From contig NC_068995.1 in the NCBI RefSeq assembly GCF_001194135.2, forward strand, positions 38,302,507 through 38,366,506: a stretch of DNA of 64,000 nt. Direction: 5' to 3'. Numbering within the stretch: the stretch's first letter is position 1; each line of letters starts with the position of its first letter. Under the pieces are notes generated by a model, which did not search any database, had not been told where the DNA came from, and saw only the letters and a program-made list of their open reading frames with translations. The stretch comes from Octopus bimaculoides. Lineage: Eukaryota. Shown here piece after piece: positions 14,246 to 63,658 of this stretch. The position numbers and the translations under genes are program-made.

Positions 14246-15552
14246 ATTATTTATCATTGCTTTATTCTTGAGCTATACATATTTACTCTGCATCTATTTA
14301 TGATACGCTCTATGAATATGAACTACGCGTTGGCAAAATCAATTCTAAGCTGAAACACACACGTCTTAATGAATATATAAATATACTTGTGGGCGTGTTT
14401 TCAGTTATATATATATATATATATATATATATGTTTGTGTGTGTGTGCGTGTGTGCGTGTATGTGTGTGTATCTGTTTATATGCATGTATGTATGTACAT
14501 CTATAATGATGAAAAGTCATCATCATACATACATGTATGTATACATATATATGTATATATATACATATATATATATATNNNNNNNNNNNNNNNNNNNNNN
14601 NNNNNNNNNNNNNNNNNNNNNNNNNNNNNNNNNNNNNNNNNNNNNNNNNNNNNNNNNNNNNNNNNNNNNNNNNNNNNNNNNNNNNNNNNNNNNNNNNNNN
14701 NNNNNNNNNNNNNNNNNNNNNNNNNNNNNNNNNNNNNNNNNNNNNNNNNNNNNNNNNNNNNNNNNNNNNNNNNNNNNNNNNNNNNNNNNNNNNNNNNNNN
14801 NNNNNNNNNNNNNNNNNNNNNNNNNNNNNNNNNNNNNNNNNNNNNNNNNNNNNNNNNNNNNNNNNNNNNNNNNNNNNNNNNNNNNNNNNNNNNNNNNNNN
14901 NNNNNNNNNNNNNNNNNNNNNNNNNNNNNNNNNNNNNNNNNNNNNNNNNNNNNNNNNNNNNNNNNNNNNNNNNNNNNNNNNNNNNNNNNNNNNNNNNNNN
15001 NNNNNNNNNNNNNNNNNNNNNNNNNNNNNNNNNNNNNNNNNNNNNNNNNNNNNNNNNNNNNNNNNNNNNNNNNNNNNNNNNNNNNNNNNNNNNNNNNNNN
15101 NNNNNNNNNNNNNNNNNNNNNNNNNNNNNNNNNNNNNNNNNNNNNNNNNNNNNNNNNNNNNNNNNNNNNNNNNNNNNNNNNNNNNNNNNNNNNNNNNNNN
15201 NNNNNNNNNNNNNNNNNNNNNNNNNNNNNNNNNNNNNNNNNNNNNNNNNNNNNNNNNNNNNNNNNNNNNNNNNNNNNNNNNNNNNNNNNNNNNNNNNNNN
15301 NNNNNNNNNNNNNNNNNNNNNNNNNNNNNNNNNNNNNNNNTATATATATATATATATATATTTATATATCTGTTTGTGTTCTTTTTCAGTGTTTGTACAT
15401 ATATATTCGGTTTAAGTTGCCTATCTAAAGATCTTCGTCTGTATACTTGATTGGAACTCACTGCTGATCCATCAATTGCTTATCTTTTAAAAGGTATTTT
15501 CACTTCCCTACTGTTGCATAATTACACTTATCTAAGCATGTTTATACTTCAG

Positions 15553-16707
15553 ATGCTTTGGTATATTTTGCTATGTATTTTGCACTCTTCCTCGAGGGAT
15601 TCGCAGCGTGAGTTGAGAGAGCTCCTGTTTAAGAATTATAGCAACAATATAAAACCCGTTCTGTACACAGACACAATCATTGATGTGCATTTATTTGTCT
15701 TTCCCTCTAAGATTTACAAATTAGATTTAGGAGCTGGATTACTTACTGGAAAATTCCTTATTGGTTACAGATGGACTGATGAATTCTTAAGGTGGAATGA
15801 AAGCCAATTTGATAATATATCATCAATCAAAATGCCTTTGAATAAAGTTTGGGAACCTCATGCATATGTGTGTAATGCTGAAACAATATATAACGTCAGT
15901 ACTCCAATACCCGAAGCAGTGATGTTATCCAATGGCACAATAAAGACATCCACTACGTTGGTATATACCATCCACTGTAAAATTGACAATACTAAATATC
16001 CTTTTGACAAGCAGGCTTGCGAAGTACACATTTGTTTACCGTTAAGTAAACTAAATAACGTGAGAATAAAAACAATTACAACATTTAAAAAACAAGTTAC
16101 CTTAAGAAACTGGAATGTAGAAATAGACAAAGTTTTACAAAATCATAATGAAAGAATATTTTACGCGTCGTGGCACTTAACACTAACAAAATTATCAGCA
16201 CAGTCCAAAATAATAATACTTATTCCACCTTTCTTACTAACATGTGTAACGATTGCTACTTTTCTTTTGCCCCCAGATACGAAACAGAAAGTCACTTTTT
16301 CTACAACCAGTTTTCTATCAATAATGCTTTATTTGTCAAAAATGTCGAAGGATTTAGCATCCCACACAGCCAACCATTCCCTTCTATGGATATATGTCTT
16401 TTGCTTATCATGCATCAGCGCCATATCATGTATTGAATCAATACTAGTTTGCCGCATTTATGTTTACCAAAAGTGCGAGGATCAATGCCAAATGACTGAA
16501 CGAACTATATCATCGAATGGAGACGTAGATAAAAGTGAAACATGTAACAAACACTTGAATAAGAAATGGTTCGTTGAAAGGGGCTCGATGAAGAAAAATT
16601 GCAAACATTTAAAATTTTTTCAATATAGATATATTGATAAATTCTGCTTGGTCTTCTTCACGTTGCTCTTTTTAATAATAGGTATAATTTTGAATTCCAT
16701 TGCTTAG
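15553..16707 (+). CDS. Cys-loop receptor 1: atypical nAChR-like, chemotactile-receptor-like subunit, single coding exon (divergent member)
   Basis: Open ORF to TAG 16705-16707. The ORF-track start at 15451 is TTG. ATG 15553 gives a signal peptide (MLWYILLCILHSS) aligning with the paralogues (384 aa); ATG 15538 is an alternative. Shows LRELLFKNY helix, W.DE.LRW, Cys-loop CKIDNTKYPFDKQAC (C-x13-C), four hydrophobic segments and a short M3-M4 loop; no vicinal CC. Confidence 0.93.
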   Translation: MLWYILLCILHSSSRDSQRELRELLFKNYSNNIKPVLYTDTIIDVHLFVFPSKIYKLDLGAGLLTGKFLIGYRWTDEFLRWNESQFDNISSIKMPLNKVWEPHAYVCNAETIYNVSTPIPEAVMLSNGTIKTSTTLVYTIHCKIDNTKYPFDKQACEVHICLPLSKLNNVRIKTITTFKKQVTLRNWNVEIDKVLQNHNERIFYASWHLTLTKLSAQSKIIILIPPFLLTCVTIATFLLPPDTKQKVTFSTTSFLSIMLYLSKMSKDLASHTANHSLLWIYVFCLSCISAISCIESILVCRIYVYQKCEDQCQMTERTISSNGDVDKSETCNKHLNKKWFVERGSMKKNCKHLKFFQYRYIDKFCLVFFTLLFLIIGIILNSIA

Positions 16708-16916
16708 ATCATTCCTTATAAAACGTTCAGAGTAACATTAAGTGTCGCATATTAAATACTTTATGTTGTGTATCACTAGTTACATACATCCAAATGTTTA
16801 CTGTTAATTGTTATTATTCTTACTGTTATAATAACTATTATAACCATTTTTCTTGCTGTTGTGGTTGTTGCTCATTTTGTCGTTATTGTTGTTGTGATTA
16901 TTGTTATCATTATTAA

Positions 16917-17040
16917 GGTAGCGAACTGGCAGAATCGTCAGCAGGTCAAGCAAATTGCTTAACGGCATTTCATTCGATTCTACGTTCTGAGCTCAAATTT
17001 CCCCGATGATGACTTTGCTTTTCATCCTTTCAGATTCGGT
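16917..17040 (+). mobile_element. SINE family B, degenerate copy
   Basis: GGTAGCGAACTGGCAGAATCGTCAGC..GCTCAAATTTCCCCGATGATGACTTTGCTTTTCATCC. Confidence 0.7.
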
Positions 17041-17493
17041 TAAAAAAAAAAAAAAAAAAACATATTGGCTTAATGTTATAGACCGACCCCACTCCGGAAT
17101 TTTGGCCTTGTACCAAATTTTAAAGTCCTTCTTCTTCTTCTTCTTCTTNNNNNNNNNNNNNNNNNNNNNNNNNNNNNNNNNNNNNNNNNNNNNNNNNNNN
17201 NNNNNNNNNNNNNNNNNNNNNNNNNNNNNNNNNNNNNNNNNNNNNNNNNNNNNNNNNNNNNNNNNNNNNNNNNNNNNNNNNNNNNNNNNNNNNNNNNNNN
17301 NNNNNNNNNNNNNNNNNNNNNNNNNNNNNNNNNNNNNNNNNNNNNNNNNNNNNNNNNNNNNNNNNNNNNNNNNNNNNNNNNNNNNNNNNNNNNNNNNNNN
17401 NNNNNNNNNNNNNNNNNNNNNNNNNNNNNNNNNNNNNNNNNNNNNNNNNNNNNNNNNNNNNNNNNNNNNNNNNNNNNNNNNTATCATTATTAA

Positions 17494-18790: not shown

Positions 18791-19684
18791 TTATGTTTGA
18801 CTTTTGTTTTGCATTTGTACAAGTTGGATCCAAGTCTCACTCAGAGACCTCAAGAGAGAACAAGTTAGAAGTTCATGTAGGTGTTATGCCTAGGGTACCA
18901 TATATTTGGATTTGTACATAGTGTTGTTCTAGAGAATGTTTAAGAAACCATAAGAAAATTATGTGTTTGTTTTAAAATTTGAGATCACATAGACAGTAAT
19001 TTACGTAGGATATGGGCAGTTTCCATGAGCAGTATCTTTTGAACTTCAGCCATTTGGGGTTTCCCGGTATCTGAGCTAGGTAGTAATCAGCCCGTTTCGC
19101 TGTCATTCCCAGGGCACCAATGAAAATAGGTATTGTTTTAGTCTTCAGGTCCCACATTTTGCTAATTTCTTTCCAAGATCTTTATATTTGCTCAGTTTTT
19201 GGTAGGTCTTGACAGATACGTTTATATCGATTGGGACAGTCATATCACGGAGGAGGCATGATTTTTGTCTGAAGTCTTTCAGTATGATGTCTGGCCTATT
19301 TGCATCTATCTTTCTGTCAGTTTGAATGGTGAAGTTCCAGAGGAGTGCGATGTGAGCATTTTCAAGTACTGGGGGTGGTTTTTGTTCCCACCAGTTTTTA
19401 TCATGGGGCAAGTCCAGGTTTTTGCATATTACCCAGTGAATATATTGTGCAGCTCTATCATGCCTGTTGAGATACTCTGTAGGTGCAAGCAAACTGCACA
19501 TGAAGACAACATGATCAATGGTCTCATTTTGTTGTTGGCATATACGACATAATGGGGAGCTGCCGTTCTTTAATATGTTGGCCTGGTAATTCTTTGTAGG
19601 TAGGCATTGATTTTGGGCTGCTATGATAAACCCCTCTGTTTCTGATTTTAATCCAGAGGCCATTAACCATTGATGGGTAAGGGC

Positions 19685-39312: not shown

Positions 39313-40461
39313 ATGCAATTGCTAATTGTCTTAGTTTTTGTGTTAATTGGAAGCGATGCCTCGGAAAAGAATGCCTTAAAATACAGATTATTAAGAAATT
39401 ATGATAAAACAAACAGACCTGTTCATAACGATAATGATATTGTATTGGTAAATGTAACACTTGTCATATTGGACATTATTGAATTTGACATATTGAATGG
39501 TGTACTGACAAGTGATCTGACTTTGGGACTACAATGGAACGATATTAATCTTACGTGGGACGAATCGGTAAACAATATAAGTTACATAAGTCTTGCACTA
39601 CAATATATATGGCACCCTACCATACAAATGTGTAACGGCGTAATGGATAGATTCAAACTTGACGAGGACACAGAAATCTTTTTGACTAATGAAGGAACCG
39701 TTTTCTTGTATATAGACAATGTTTTCCAAACTTATTGTCGGATTAATGTAAATAAATATCCATTTGATGAACACGAATGTGATTTATTAGTTTGTTTGAA
39801 TCATCAAGTATTTTGGGTAGCATCTATCAGTGAATTTGATCATTTTTCGATGTTAGAATCCACATCCAGTAACTGGGATTTTAGGTTTGAAATGAGAGAA
39901 CGTAAAAGAAAGCCCAGCAAAGCAGCTGGCGTTGTAGTTCACAGCAAAAGAAAAGTTACTAGCGCCACAATAACAAAAATAATACCCCCAGTAATGTTAA
40001 CATTCTTGATACTCTCTGTTCATTTTTTGCCACCTGAATCTGGAGAAAAGGTTTCTGTTGCAATTACCGTGTTCCTTGCAAATATTGTATTCCTTTCTGA
40101 AACTGAAAAATTATTGGGCAATAAGTCTCGTGAAGCATCTATATATCTAATATATCTCCTGATTCTGACATTTGTAAGCGGAGTGTCTACTATCGTCTCA
40201 GTTGTTATATCTAAACTGTATGCACAACCGAGAGGTACCAACATAAAATCATCGCCAGAAACAACACAAAACTCAGGCTTTTCGAAGAATAAAGTTGGGA
40301 TTTTAGAATCTTCAAGTGAGCTAACCGTAAAAACAAAATTCAATAATTATTTTAAGAAACATTTTCTAACCCACCAGAATCTTGATAAAATATTTTTCTT
40401 ACTAATTATTATATTCTTACTACTCTATATTATAATTGCTTTAGCCTCTTCTGAGAAATAA
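39313..40461 (+). CDS. Cys-loop receptor 2: chemotactile-receptor-like subunit, single coding exon (382 aa)
   Basis: Signal peptide, LLRNYDKTNRPV, W.D.NL.W, WHPTIQMCN, Cys-loop CRINVNKYPFDEHEC, M1-M4 with PPESGEKVS; no vicinal CC; intact ATG-TAA. Confidence 0.96.
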   Translation: MQLLIVLVFVLIGSDASEKNALKYRLLRNYDKTNRPVHNDNDIVLVNVTLVILDIIEFDILNGVLTSDLTLGLQWNDINLTWDESVNNISYISLALQYIWHPTIQMCNGVMDRFKLDEDTEIFLTNEGTVFLYIDNVFQTYCRINVNKYPFDEHECDLLVCLNHQVFWVASISEFDHFSMLESTSSNWDFRFEMRERKRKPSKAAGVVVHSKRKVTSATITKIIPPVMLTFLILSVHFLPPESGEKVSVAITVFLANIVFLSETEKLLGNKSREASIYLIYLLILTFVSGVSTIVSVVISKLYAQPRGTNIKSSPETTQNSGFSKNKVGILESSSELTVKTKFNNYFKKHFLTHQNLDKIFFLLIIIFLLLYIIIALASSEK

Positions 40462-44541: not shown

Positions 44542-45687
44542 ATGAAATTAATAGCTGTCTTAATTTTTACGTTAATTGGAAGCATTTCGTCCAAGAGAAG
44601 CGCACTCCGAGATATGTTATTAAAGAAGTACGATAAAACAAAGAGACCAGTTGAATACGATGATGACATCCTATACGCAAATGTATCACTTACTCTAAAG
44701 AAAATTATAGAATTAGATATTCTAAAAGGTGACATCGCAAGTAATCTTATACTCGGCTTCGAATGGAACGACGTTAATCTGAAATGGACTGATTCACAAT
44801 ATAATATAAGTTACATAAATGTCAAATTAAGTGATGTATGGTATCCTAACATACAAATATGTAATAGTGTAACAGGTAAATTTAGTTTTGATGATAACAA
44901 GGAAGTAACAGTAAATAGGAACGGAGACGTTAACTTATATATAGACAAAATATTCGAAACTTACTGCAGGATTAACGTTGAAAAATACCCTTTTGATGAA
45001 CACGAATGTGATATATCTGTTTGCTTTGAGCATCAGATGTATGTGGAAGAAACAGTGGGGGAATTTGATTACGAAGTAAAACTCCAATCTGCATCCAATC
45101 AATGGGACTTTAATTTTGAAAAATCTGACGTTGAAAATGATAATATTGTAGCAGTTGGTTTTATAATTTACGGCAAGAGAAAAGTTAGCAGTGCAACAAT
45201 AACTAAAATTATACCTCCAATAATGTTAACATTATTGGTCCTTTCTGTCCATTTACTGCCACCTGAATCTGGAGAGAAAGTTTCTGTTGCAATCACTGTT
45301 TTTCTTACAAATATCGTTTTCCTTTCTGAAACTGAAAAAATATTGGGTAATAATTCTCAAGACGCCTCCATATATCTAATGTATCTCTTAATTCTGACAC
45401 TTGTCAGCGGATGTTCTTCTGTTTTCTCGATAATAGTGTGTAAATTGTATGCGAACCAGACTGGAGCCAACACCAATTCAGCTCCCGAAATTACTCAAGA
45501 ATCAAATGGACAAAGAAATAGAGTTGGTGTCTCAGAAATTTCAGACGAACAAAATATTAAAATAACAGCTACAAAGCCTTGTAAAAAGCATTTATTAACC
45601 TATAAGAAACTGGACCAAATAATTTTGTTAATAATTGTTATATTTCTACTACTCTTTATCATTATTTCTGTGTCGACGTCTTCGTAG
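44542..45687 (+). CDS. Cys-loop receptor 3: chemotactile-receptor-like subunit, single coding exon (381 aa)
   Basis: Signal peptide MKLIAVLIFTLIGS, LLKKYDKTKRPV, WYPNIQICN, Cys-loop CRINVEKYPFDEHEC, PPESGEKVS, four TM segments; intact ATG-TAG. Confidence 0.96.
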   Translation: MKLIAVLIFTLIGSISSKRSALRDMLLKKYDKTKRPVEYDDDILYANVSLTLKKIIELDILKGDIASNLILGFEWNDVNLKWTDSQYNISYINVKLSDVWYPNIQICNSVTGKFSFDDNKEVTVNRNGDVNLYIDKIFETYCRINVEKYPFDEHECDISVCFEHQMYVEETVGEFDYEVKLQSASNQWDFNFEKSDVENDNIVAVGFIIYGKRKVSSATITKIIPPIMLTLLVLSVHLLPPESGEKVSVAITVFLTNIVFLSETEKILGNNSQDASIYLMYLLILTLVSGCSSVFSIIVCKLYANQTGANTNSAPEITQESNGQRNRVGVSEISDEQNIKITATKPCKKHLLTYKKLDQIILLIIVIFLLLFIIISVSTSS

Positions 45688-59321: not shown

Positions 59322-59458
59322 GTAATTGGAACTCTTTTTAGACGTTTGTGTATTAATTTGGACACAAAATACATTGTCAGTACATACGTAATTTACATCA
59401 TCCCTATTATTAGGATACTTTTAATAAAAAATACTTCCTATATGTTTTAACTATGCAG
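59322..59458 (+). other. Candidate 5'-UTR intron of gene 4
   Basis: GAAACGCAAG|GTAATT donor and TTTTAACTATGCAG|GAGAAATATATAG acceptor; the same junction contexts occur at 62321 and 62471. Confidence 0.55.
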
Positions 59459-59551
59459 GAGAAATATATAGAAAGACGCAACACATGCACAGACTTAAAT
59501 ATACTAAGAAAAAAAATTATCAAGCGCAATATTTCCTTTAAATTGATCATC

Positions 59552-60697
59552 ATGAAATTGATAGTTGCCTTAATTCATATTTCAATTGCAAGTGCTTCTT
59601 CAGAAAATATACCTCTAAAAACAGTGTTATTCAGCAATTACGATAAAACAAAGAAACCGGCTAATGAGGAAGATGGCTTAGTATATGTAAATGTGTCACT
59701 ATTCGTAGAGAACATTATTGGATTAGACATCAAGCAAGGTGTACTGGCAAGTAATTTAATACTCGGCATAAACTGGCGCGACACTAATCTCAAGTGGGAT
59801 AACTCAAAATACGGGAAAAGTCTCATAAATGTTGAATTAGTTAAGATATGGTACCCTAATATTCAAATATGTAATAGCATAACGGGTAAATTTCATATGG
59901 ATCCGAACATGGCAGTCACTATAAATTCTACCGGGTACATTCACTTGTATATAGACGAAATATTCAAAACTTACTGCAGGATTAACGTTCAGAAATATCC
60001 TTTTGATGAGCACGAATGTGATATATTGGTTTGCTTTGCGCATCTGATGCATATGGAGGAAAGAATAGGTGCGTTTGAGTACGATATAGAATCCAAATCC
60101 AAATCAAAACAATGGAATTTCAAATTTGAAGAGATTGACACGGGAAAGACGAATATTACAGCAGTGGGCCTTACAGTTCACAGCAAGAGAAAAATTAACA
60201 GTGCAACAATAACAAAAATTATACCCCCAATTATGTTAACATTTTTGATCTTTGCTGTCCATCTGCTCCCGGCTGACTCAGGAGAGAAAGTTTCACTTGC
60301 AATCACTGTTTTTCTTACAAACATAGTTTTCCTTTCTGAAACTGAAAAAACATTGGGTAATAATTCTGAGGAACCATCTGCATATCTAATATATCTCTTA
60401 ATTTTGACATTTGTCAGCGGTTGTTCTACTGTCGTGTCAGTAATTATATGTAAAGTGCATGCTCACCAGACTGGATCGAAAAATAACTCAACTCCAGAAA
60501 TTGCAAACGAAACAAATAGATCAAGAAACAGGGTTGGTGTTTCAGAAATCTCAGATGAACAAAATATGAAGATAAAGGCGAAAACTGCGTATAAAAAACA
60601 TGTTATAACATCTCAGAAACTAGACAAAATATCTGTGTCAATAATTGTCGTATTTCTCATGCTCTATATCATAATTGCTTTGTCAGATATTAAGTAA
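59552..60697 (+). CDS. Cys-loop receptor 4: chemotactile-receptor-like subunit, single coding exon (381 aa)
   Basis: ATG 59552 (MKLIVALIHIS) aligns with the paralogue starts; WYPNIQICN, Cys-loop CRINVQKYPFDEHEC, PADSGEKVS, four TM segments; intact to TAA 60695-60697. Confidence 0.95.
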   Translation: MKLIVALIHISIASASSENIPLKTVLFSNYDKTKKPANEEDGLVYVNVSLFVENIIGLDIKQGVLASNLILGINWRDTNLKWDNSKYGKSLINVELVKIWYPNIQICNSITGKFHMDPNMAVTINSTGYIHLYIDEIFKTYCRINVQKYPFDEHECDILVCFAHLMHMEERIGAFEYDIESKSKSKQWNFKFEEIDTGKTNITAVGLTVHSKRKINSATITKIIPPIMLTFLIFAVHLLPADSGEKVSLAITVFLTNIVFLSETEKTLGNNSEEPSAYLIYLLILTFVSGCSTVVSVIICKVHAHQTGSKNNSTPEIANETNRSRNRVGVSEISDEQNMKIKAKTAYKKHVITSQKLDKISVSIIVVFLMLYIIIALSDIK

Positions 60698-62560: not shown

Positions 62561-63658
62561 ATGAAATTGATAGTTGCTCTAATGTTTATGTCATGTGGAA
62601 GCGCTTCTCCATACGAAAACGGCTTTTTTCCCAACGTATTAAAAAATTATCATAAAACAAAGAGACCTATTGATGACGTTGAGAATATCATATTCATAAA
62701 TGTGTCACTTAACGTAAAGCGTGTTATTGAATCGGGTATTAACCAAGTACAGCATAAAATGGATGGTCGTTAATCGGAAATGGGAATATTCAGTTTATGG
62801 TATAAATCATACGAATGTTTTCTTATATGAAATTCAGTATCCTAACATACAAATATGTAATATTAATATCGTATCGGGGGATTTCAGTTGTTTTGATCTG
62901 TTCAAAGTAGTCACTGTCAATGCTGATAGGATCGTTCACTTATATATGGACAAAATATTCAAAACTTTGTGCAGGATTAACGGTAAAAAATATCCTTTCG
63001 ATGAGTACGAATATGATATAACGTTTTGCTTTGTATGTAGAGGAAAACACCTAAATCAAATCAATGGGATTTCAATTTTTAAGAGAGTGACGGCGAAAAG
63101 GAATATATTATAGCAGTTGGTCTTACAGTTCAGGGCAAGAGGAACGTTAGCAGTGTAACAGTAACAAAAATTATACACCCAACAATGTTAACGTTATTGA
63201 TATTTTCTGTCCATTTATTTCCGCCTGCATCTGGAGTCAAAGTTTCTCTTGCAATTATTGTTTTTCTTACAAACATCGTTTTCCTTTCTGAAACTGAAAA
63301 AAAAAAAAATATTCGGTAATAATTCTCAGGATCCCTCCATATATCTAATATAATTTTTTAATTCTGAAATTTGTCCGGCGAATGTTCTACTGTCGAGTCA
63401 GTAATTGTGTGTACACTTTTTGCTCACAAGACTGGATCGAACATTAATTAAGCTCCAGAAATTGCACAACAATCAAATAGATCAAGAAAAAGTGTTTGTG
63501 TCTCAGAAACCTCAGATAAACAAAATTTTAAAATAAAAACTCTGAATTCTCATCAGAAATATTTTCTAACGCATCAAAAAGTAGACAAAATAGTTTTGTC
63601 AATAATTGTTGTATACCTCTTACTCTATATCATCTTTGCTTTGTCAGACTCTTGGTAA
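62561..63658 (+). pseudogene. Cys-loop receptor 5: chemotactile-receptor-like pseudogene
   Basis: Colinear with genes 3/4 from ATG 62561 to TAA 63656-63658. Lesions: net 23-nt deletion at ~62750, Cys-loop Cys to Tyr (63012-63014), net 43-nt deletion at ~63035-63058 (vs gene 3), stops at 63080, 63351 and 63449, A-run expanded from 6 to 13 (63297-63309), and a +1 insertion near 63375. Confidence 0.95.

Follow-up and report, generated by a model that had tools for sequence, protein, structure and literature searches.

The chemotactile receptors (CRs) of Octopus bimaculoides are about 26 intronless, tandemly arranged derivatives of nicotinic acetylcholine receptors (nAChRs) with poorly soluble ligands (PMC11526382; bioRxiv 10.1101/2025.03.03.641191; PMC13174522), and their intronless structure is regarded as characteristic of the family (PMC13174522). 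They form both homo- and heteropentamers and are non-selective cation channels (PMC11526382), which agrees with the cation-channel family pictured in a preliminary description of the locus considered here. In CRT1, the residue E104 faces the vestibule and raises Ca2+ permeation, and the substitution E104A leads to a lower Ca2+ permeability (bioRxiv 10.1101/2025.03.03.641191). A preprint of May 2026 reports in one sentence that the second transmembrane segment (TM2) of the CR clade has ‘mixed ion selectivity patterns’ (PMC13174522), so CRs without the Gly-Glu-Lys (GEK) filter have already been noticed in bulk. Here we examine a stretch of 64,000 nucleotides of the O. bimaculoides genome (hereafter the window; RefSeq assembly GCF_001194135.2, contig NC_068995.1, positions 38,302,507 to 38,366,506 of the forward strand) and in it a single-exon receptor gene, gene 1, in which the filter at the inner mouth of the pore reads Lys-Gln-Lys (KQK). 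Judged from its sequence, gene 1 belongs to the octopus CR branch of the nicotinic-type pentameric channels, as a divergent gene that selection has maintained.

The CR family, its fold and the principle that position -1' of the pore helix M2 controls charge selectivity are already known. The charged rings were reportedly described by Imoto in 1988, Bertrand in 1993 is said to have found that E-1'A abolishes the Ca2+ permeability of alpha7, and Cymes and Grosman in 2005 reportedly found that one pore-facing Lys strongly reduces the cation current. Among the charged rings, the Glu ring at -1' has the largest effect on conductance and is the main barrier to Cl- (PMC8011927). Whether loss of the -1' Glu is enough to change charge selectivity is contested, and alpha7, 5-HT3A, the glycine receptor (GlyR) and ZAC give different answers (PMC8011927, PMC11536092). 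E-1'A abolishes the Cl- barrier in simulation, alpha7 turns anionic once a Pro insertion and V13'T join E-1'A, 5-HT3A with E-1'A is slightly anionic and GlyR with A-1'E is cationic (PMC8011927). The medaka ZAC (OlZAC), which naturally carries Gly at -1', is not cation selective, and G247E lowers its PCl/PNa (PMC11536092). In the anion-selective nicotinic-type channels of Lymnaea and Schistosoma (SmACC-1/2), a Pro-Ala motif replaces the -1' Glu (PMC4055736), and heteromeric 5-HT3 receptors have a Ca2+ permeability below that of 5-HT3A homomers (PMC4055881).

Positions 16282-16290 of the window read AAA CAG AAA and encode K249-Q250-K251 of gene 1 within the peptide LLPPDTKQKVTFSTTSFLSIMLYLSKMSKD; the surrounding peptide matches what the preliminary description had quoted. 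Between M1 and M3, gene 1 aligns with its paralogues and with the solved CRT1/CR518 chain with zero gaps, and the prime numbering is therefore unambiguous: the pore positions are D-4', T-3', K-2', Q-1', K0', T2', T6', L9', L13', S16', K17', S19', K20' and D21'. These ungapped alignments bear out the earlier placement of KQK at the cytoplasmic mouth of M2, with the loop length unchanged, L9' retained and the -1' acid lost. The paralogue contrast that had been drawn with GEK holds as well, the codons having been located in genes 2, 3 and 4 (Table 1). Genes 2 and 3 share the pore peptide LLPPESGEKVSVAITVFL and gene 4 has LLPADSGEKVSLAITVFL, the pore contexts across genes 2-4 reading ...PPESGEKVSVAITVFL and ...PADSGEKVSLAITVFL.

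An exhaustive HMMER scan of 1.84 billion cluster representatives (50% identity) gave 4,135 homologues, and pores were taken from the best 151 of these proteins. This yielded 178 pore domains, more than the number of proteins because many are fused tandem models. Among the nearest 150 homologues, many are 600-1,470 aa long with two or three pore domains; these are most likely gene models that fuse adjacent tandem receptor genes, inflating the per-protein domain counts. At -1' the 178 domains have an acid in 172 cases (E 166, D 6), the others being Q 2, K 2, S 1 and A 1, and both Gln belong to gene 1 and its relative P0002. Gly occupies -2' in 158 domains, and Lys is found there solely in the same two proteins. 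Position 0' is Lys or Arg in 175 of the 178, a base at this position being universal in the superfamily. By these counts, KQK is far rarer than expected by chance. KQK lies three non-synonymous substitutions away from the GGA-GAR codons of the paralogues; they affect two neighbouring codons, within the motif that the family conserves most. The -1' acid has also been lost in distant nAChR/5-HT3-like proteins, namely P0014 (G-K-R, which puts Lys at -1', in each of its two fused pore domains), P0071 (G-S-K) and P0125 (G-A-K).

P0002, recovered by a word-indexed protein search, is a protein of 381 aa that is 71% identical to gene 1 and lies on contigs (L001-L003) from independent assemblies of SRR11869384, SRR11869390 and SRR11869394. 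It carries an identical LLPPDTKQKVTFSTTSFLSIMLYLS, with KQK encoded by AAA CAA AAA. The check for a base error in KQK found none: the same motif, with the synonymous CAA in place of CAG for Gln, in an independently assembled sequence excludes sequencing or assembly error as its source. The check for conservation likewise came out in favour of the motif, which is kept in this 71%-identical relative. Conservation of KQK rests on one relative, because word-indexed searches with gene 1 and with a gene 1 plus P0002 profile gave no further relatives beyond P0001, the annotated protein of gene 1, and P0002.

The full-length open reading frame (ORF) of gene 1 is also open in P0002 (L001), and the two sequences show where change has been tolerated. 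By the Nei-Gojobori method, dN/dS between gene 1 and P0002 is 0.45 for the whole gene at a dS of 0.36. It amounts to 0.57 in the ligand-binding domain (LBD) and 0.56 in the cytoplasmic loop, compared with 0.08 in M1, 0.04 in the M1-M2 loop plus M2, and 0.13 over M1-M3. Non-synonymous change is significantly depleted in the pore region (Fisher p 1e-5 to 3e-7), the loop plus M2 is identical at 28 of 29 residues, and two or fewer differences in 47 residues have a probability of 3e-5 under the overall divergence of gene 1 and P0002. As measured by these ratios, M1-M2 is under strong purifying selection and the LBD is fast-evolving, like that of other CRs. The M1-M2 values of 0.04-0.08 settle the question of gene decay in favour of an intact gene. 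Because of this constraint, and in contrast to a decayed copy at 62561-63652, gene 1 can be read as a gene kept by selection together with its unusual pore. That gene 1 is a pseudogene was rejected on its dN/dS and open ORF, the decayed copy differing in its stops, frameshifts and Gly-Val-Lys (GVK) filter.

Among solved structures, the top matches of gene 1 are octopus CRT1/CR518 (8EIS, 9E6B; E 4e-49), whereas the structures of squid CRB1, 5-HT3A and nAChR match at about 1e-20. The identity of gene 1 is 26-29% to genes 2-4 and does not exceed about 31% for any sampled 50%-cluster representative other than P0002. A neighbour-joining tree places gene 1 and P0002 beside P0004, which bears Gly-Glu-Arg (GER), within a clade of CRT1-like proteins and genes 2-4. 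CRT1 is a better comparator than genes 2-4, since gene 1 lies nearer the CRT1-like branch (E 4e-49) and shares only about 27% identity with genes 2-4. The other sampled members of the clade of gene 1 have Glu at -1' in 14 of 14 cases, which argues that KQK is derived from a GEK or GER ancestor.

Gene 1 has the hallmarks of a pentameric ligand-gated ion channel (pLGIC), with an LBD, a Cys-x13-Cys loop, four transmembrane helices and L9' in M2. It also has those of a CR: it is nearest to CRs and not to neuronal nAChRs, it is intronless, it lies in a tandem cluster and it has lost the canonical acetylcholine (ACh)-binding residues. The extracellular domain (ECD) contains no CC pair, the vicinal Cys of loop C being lost, and the segment HICLPLSK, which we take to be loop B relative to alpha7, aligns with YLCVALHT of CRT1 and has no Trp. 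The typical CR pore, with a G-E-K/R filter and an acidic vestibule, is absent, and it is here that gene 1 departs from an ordinary member of the family. Of the features of anionic pLGICs, gene 1 has the lack of a -1' acid together with a base at 0' (Q-1', K0'), and it does not have Pro-Ala-(Arg/Lys) with a longer M1-M2 linker, its sequence being PPDTKQKV and its linker as long as that of the GEK paralogues. Membership of the Pro-Ala anionic nAChR clade was rejected, there being no Pro and no Ala in the filter.

The filter is one of several places along the permeation path where charge differs from that of the relatives. From -4' to 0', the inner mouth has a net charge of +1 in gene 1 and P0002 and of -1 in CRT1 and genes 2-4. 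In the outer M2 ring, positions 17'/19'/20' are K/S/K in gene 1, N/S/K in P0002, E/E/K in genes 2-4 and Q/D/K in CRT1. The preliminary description had singled out Lys at 17' and 20', an argument that is largely invalid, because 20' Lys is family-wide (genes 2-4, CRT1 and most CR-clade relatives have it) and 17' Lys is not conserved, being Asn in P0002. By this comparison, the lineage is set apart in the outer ring by its lost 17' and 19' acids, not by the 20' Lys. The equivalents of D100/E103/E104/D106 of CRT1 are T/N/V/T in gene 1 and K/K/V/T in P0002.

The larger segments point the same way, with the proviso that the following charges are whole-segment counts over all residues and not just those that line the pathway. 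Over the 200 residues before M1 (ECD), the net charge is +9 in P0002 and +6 in gene 1, the highest and the joint second-highest values, and 95 single-domain homologues have a mean of -6.2 (SD 5.2). Over the 30 residues before M4 it is +7 in both (mean of the 95 homologues -0.6, SD 2.7), and one homologue alone lies above +7. The sum of the two segments is +13 in gene 1, +16 in P0002 and +7 in the next homologue. In other pLGICs, the MA helix frames the cytoplasmic portals. Read from these residues, the electrostatics of the permeation path of gene 1 appear to be re-set from negative to positive at the inner mouth, the outer M2 ring, the vestibule and the pre-M4 stretch, and a coordinated shift of this kind would be hard to explain as neutral tolerance.

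The comparison with CRT1/CR518 summarizes what has been kept and what has changed. Alongside the ungapped M1-M3 alignment, both are intronless and lie in tandem arrays, both have the Cys-loop and have neither the Cys pair of loop C nor the Trp of loop B, both share the framework LLPP...K0'...L9'...K20', and in both the LBD is fast-evolving. In contrast, CRT1 has G-E-K, D19' and an acidic vestibule loop where gene 1 has K-Q-K, S19' and T/N/V/T. The nearest CRT1-like representative has an ECD charge of -6 and a pre-M4 charge of 0, compared with +6 and +7 in gene 1. Identity is low, gene 1 not exceeding 31% to any sampled relative other than P0002.

We favour, without holding it firmly, the prediction that channels with a gene 1 subunit would not show the high Ca2+ permeability or the strong cation preference that mark GEK CRs. 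Within a heteropentamer, every gene 1 subunit would bring a Lys into the narrowest and most charge-sensitive ring and take away a Glu there. As a heteromer partner, gene 1 could then hold back Ca2+ entry and cation conductance and tune the ionic signal of the CR complex, a role proposed by analogy with heteromeric 5-HT3 receptors, which are less Ca2+ permeable. A gene 1 homopentamer, with five -2' Lys and no -1' acid, would be expected to be anything from weakly selective to anion-preferring. Parallels are offered by 5-HT3B and the muscle AChR gamma and epsilon subunits, in which a subunit without an intermediate-ring acid joins Glu-bearing partners and alters Ca2+ permeability and conductance. 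To our knowledge, none of these has a -2' Lys and none shows a positive shift along the whole pathway. In 5-HT3B, basic MA residues are removed and conductance rises, which is the reverse of what the basic pre-M4 stretch of gene 1 presents. The preliminary description had proposed a low-Ca2+, non-selective or anion-leaning subunit; that reading gains from the pathway-wide charge shift, while its anion-leaning version is weakened by the absent Pro-Ala, the kept D-4' and L13' and the cation-type linker, and by experiments in which E-1'A leaves alpha7 cationic and makes 5-HT3A no more than slightly anionic (PMC8011927).

Several points weigh against a loss of Ca2+ permeability and cation preference. 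Gene 1 keeps D-4', a linker of cation-type length and Leu at 13', and it has no Pro-Ala; alpha7 with E-1'A is still cationic in experiment (PMC8011927); and the ECD and pre-M4 charges are segment totals, as stated above. Heteromerisation of gene 1 with any particular CR partner is an assumption. P0002, the one close relative found, may represent the orthologue of gene 1 or a paralogue of long standing. The three Logan contigs that carry it are identical, end in microsatellites and break at a (GTT)n tract equivalent to one 3' of gene 1; with such ends they are no proof of transcription, and they could be genomic rather than transcript-derived. The exact products of 389 aa, 384 aa and 335 aa are absent from the contig collection, transcript-like contigs included.

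A stronger claim would be that gene 1 is a true anion-selective (chloride) channel, an inhibitory CR with a KQK filter in place of Pro-Ala-Arg, and this we regard as doubtful. All four charged levels shift consistently toward positive, which is the pattern of anionic pLGICs and not of a mere accessory cationic subunit. In addition, 5-HT3A with E-1'A alone is slightly anion-selective and neutralisation of E-1' in GLIC and alpha7 inverts selectivity in simulation (PMC8011927), anionic nAChR-type channels did evolve in molluscs (PMC4055736), and the ‘mixed ion selectivity patterns’ of the CR clade would accommodate such a member (PMC13174522). However, gene 1 is without the Pro-Ala or the extra linker residue that define all known natural anionic nAChR-like channels (PMC4055736), and alpha7 required a Pro insertion and V13'T beyond E-1'A (PMC8011927), whereas 13' in gene 1 is a hydrophobic Leu and D-4' is kept. 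Formation of homomers by gene 1 is, moreover, presumed. Cymes and Grosman in 2016 reportedly linked anion selectivity to how the 0' base is oriented, which depends on the linker, and this also counts against a chloride channel. Like the Lymnaea and Schistosoma (SmACC-1/2) channels, gene 1 has lost the -1' Glu of cationic nAChR ancestors within the lophotrochozoans, but those channels have Pro-Ala, whereas gene 1 carries Lys at -2' and neither a Pro nor an extra residue; they are also neuronal or muscle receptors gated by ACh and nicotine, whereas gene 1 belongs to the CR clade. OlZAC resembles gene 1 as a member of the cationic branch that is naturally without the -1' acid; it differs in being a Zn2+-gated vertebrate channel of another family with a neutral Gly in place of Lys-Gln, and a coordinated charge shift has not been reported for it.

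Gln occupies -1' in the gamma and epsilon subunits of the vertebrate muscle AChR. Gene 1 might by comparison be an ordinary non-selective cation subunit, in which KQK alters conductance quantitatively and has no distinct role; we consider this quite unlikely. The experimental cation selectivity of alpha7 with E-1'A (PMC8011927), the kept D-4' and cation-type linker length, and the status of AChR gamma and epsilon as cation-channel subunits with atypical linkers (PMC13003095) speak for it. It fits poorly with the -2' Lys, which is unique to gene 1 and P0002 among the 178 pore domains, with the very strong constraint under which KQK is held, and with the lost vestibule and outer-ring acids and ECD and pre-M4 charges that are extreme and positive in the two proteins. 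That gene 1 is non-functional, as an unexpressed or decaying duplicate or through an assembly error in the motif, is very improbable: although the annotated protein model ends at residue 335, the Pfam transmembrane model is under threshold, the exact product is absent from the contig collection and the assembly around the gene has many N gaps, the 389-codon ORF is open and colinear with that of P0002 at a dS of 0.36 (dN/dS 0.45 overall and 0.04-0.13 in the transmembrane domain), KQK is reproduced in an independent assembly, and the pseudogene at 62561-63652 shows what real decay looks like, with frameshifts, stops and GVK.

A literature search, with the primary CR papers outside its scope, found no description of the KQK filter and its conservation under strong constraint, nor of the coordinated loss of E104-type acids with a positive ECD and pre-M4 charge. 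CRs, a sensory family of recent discovery, encode different ionic signals through their subunit combinations, and a conserved charge-reversed subunit would be the most extreme tuning element among them. With gene 1, less Ca2+ could enter the sensory cell, or the cell could even be hyperpolarised or shunted; the peripheral coding of ‘taste by touch’ would then gain an inhibitory or gain-control arm. The locus also offers a natural experiment on whether loss of the -1' Glu with a Lys at -2', and no Pro insertion, is enough to change charge selectivity. The boldest form of the proposal, which we think unlikely on the present features, is that octopus suckers carry a naturally evolved anion-conducting, potentially inhibitory or shunting CR with a KQK ring and an electropositive vestibule and portals. 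If true, it would be a route from cation to anion conduction other than the Pro-Ala of every known natural anionic pLGIC.

Table 1 Features of gene 1 and of the receptor gene cluster in the window
Feature	Positions	Strand	Description
Gene 1	15538..16707	+	Divergent CR-family Cys-loop subunit; 389 aa plus stop, one exon
Vestibule (omega) loop of gene 1, CNAETIYNVSTP	15871..15906	+	Aligns ungapped (HMMER, 8EIS) with the D100/E103/E104/D106 loop of CRT1
Cys-loop of gene 1, CKIDNTKYPFDKQAC	15976..16020	+	C147-x13-C161, YPFD core; all but two residues the same in P0002
M1 helix of gene 1, IIILIPPFLLTCVTIATFL	16210..16266	+	Alignment to CRT1; low-confidence AlphaFold2 helix 231-243
D247 of gene 1	16276..16278	+	-4' cytoplasmic-ring acid, kept; clade alignment
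K249-Q250-K251 of gene 1	16282..16290	+	-2'/-1'/0'; relatives have G-E-K/R here
M2 pore helix of gene 1, KQKVTFSTTSFLSIMLYLSKMSKD	16282..16353	+	T2', T6', L9', L13', S16', K17', S19', K20', D21'; AlphaFold2 helix 249-272
M3 helix of gene 1	16369..16467	+	Alignment to CRT1; AlphaFold2 model
Basic pre-M4 stretch of gene 1, HLNKKWFVERGSMKKNCKHLKFFQYRYIDK	16552..16641	+	Net +7; where the MA helix sits in other pLGICs
M4 helix of gene 1	16642..16704	+	Not in the annotated 335-aa model P0001
Gene 2	39313..40461	+	GEK-type CR paralogue; GEK at 40042-40050; 26-27% identical to gene 1
Gene 3	44542..45687	+	GEK-type CR paralogue; GEK at 45271-45279
Gene 4	59552..60697	+	GEK-type CR paralogue; GEK at 60281-60289; ORF opening at 59453
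Pseudogene, fifth copy	62561..63652	+	Gene 2-4 type; frameshifts, several stops, coding split over three frames

Gene 1 carries a signal peptide, the Cys-loop and M1 to M4 in an uninterrupted ORF. The Pfam domain Neur_chan_LBD (PF02931) is found in gene 1 at E 2.5e-28, with 99 bits against a cut-off of 26. The transmembrane domain PF02932 is present in genes 2-4 and below threshold in gene 1; for P0002, the precomputed domain is listed and the match at the P0002 loci is faint. An AlphaFold2 monomer of gene 1, built from a 5-sequence alignment, has a pLDDT of 53.7 and a pTM of 0.35, and only its helix boundaries were used (231-243, 249-272, 278-317 and 364-388, at low confidence). The annotated protein P0001 (335 aa, 15538-16542) stops at ...DVDKSET and leaves out the basic pre-M4 stretch and M4 (16543-16707); as the open 389-codon ORF is conserved in P0002, this annotation looks truncated or mis-spliced. 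At the other end, both genes have an in-frame ATG that precedes by five codons the start assigned to P0002 by the gene caller (L001 205-232; window 15538-15555). The alternative starts compared are MLLCQ-MIWY... and MFILQ-MLWY..., and the presence of the upstream ATG in both indicates that the longer start is conserved.

The cluster comprises four intact single-exon Cys-loop receptor genes and one pseudogene, all on the + strand and spanning 48 kb of the window. The window is rich in gaps, with 19 N-runs of at least 10 bases and 4,855 N in total. A record from O. bimaculoides (CM046615.1, GCA_001194135.2) matches the product of gene 3 exactly. The ORF of gene 4 starts 33 codons upstream (59453-59551) of the Met matching the starts of genes 2 and 3 in the alignment, and this extension (MQEKYIERRN...) is probably not translated. 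In the pseudogene, the filter has decayed to G-V-K at 63233-63241. Between gene 1 and the array of genes 2-4, an ORF on the - strand (19145-19663) has a weak match to zf-RVT (reverse-transcriptase zinc-binding; E 2.8e-5, slightly under the Pfam cut-off) and is probably retroelement debris. Directly 3' of gene 1, positions 16880-17140 hold a low-complexity (GTT/ATT)n tract, followed by a repeat-like element with a poly-A tail and an N gap.

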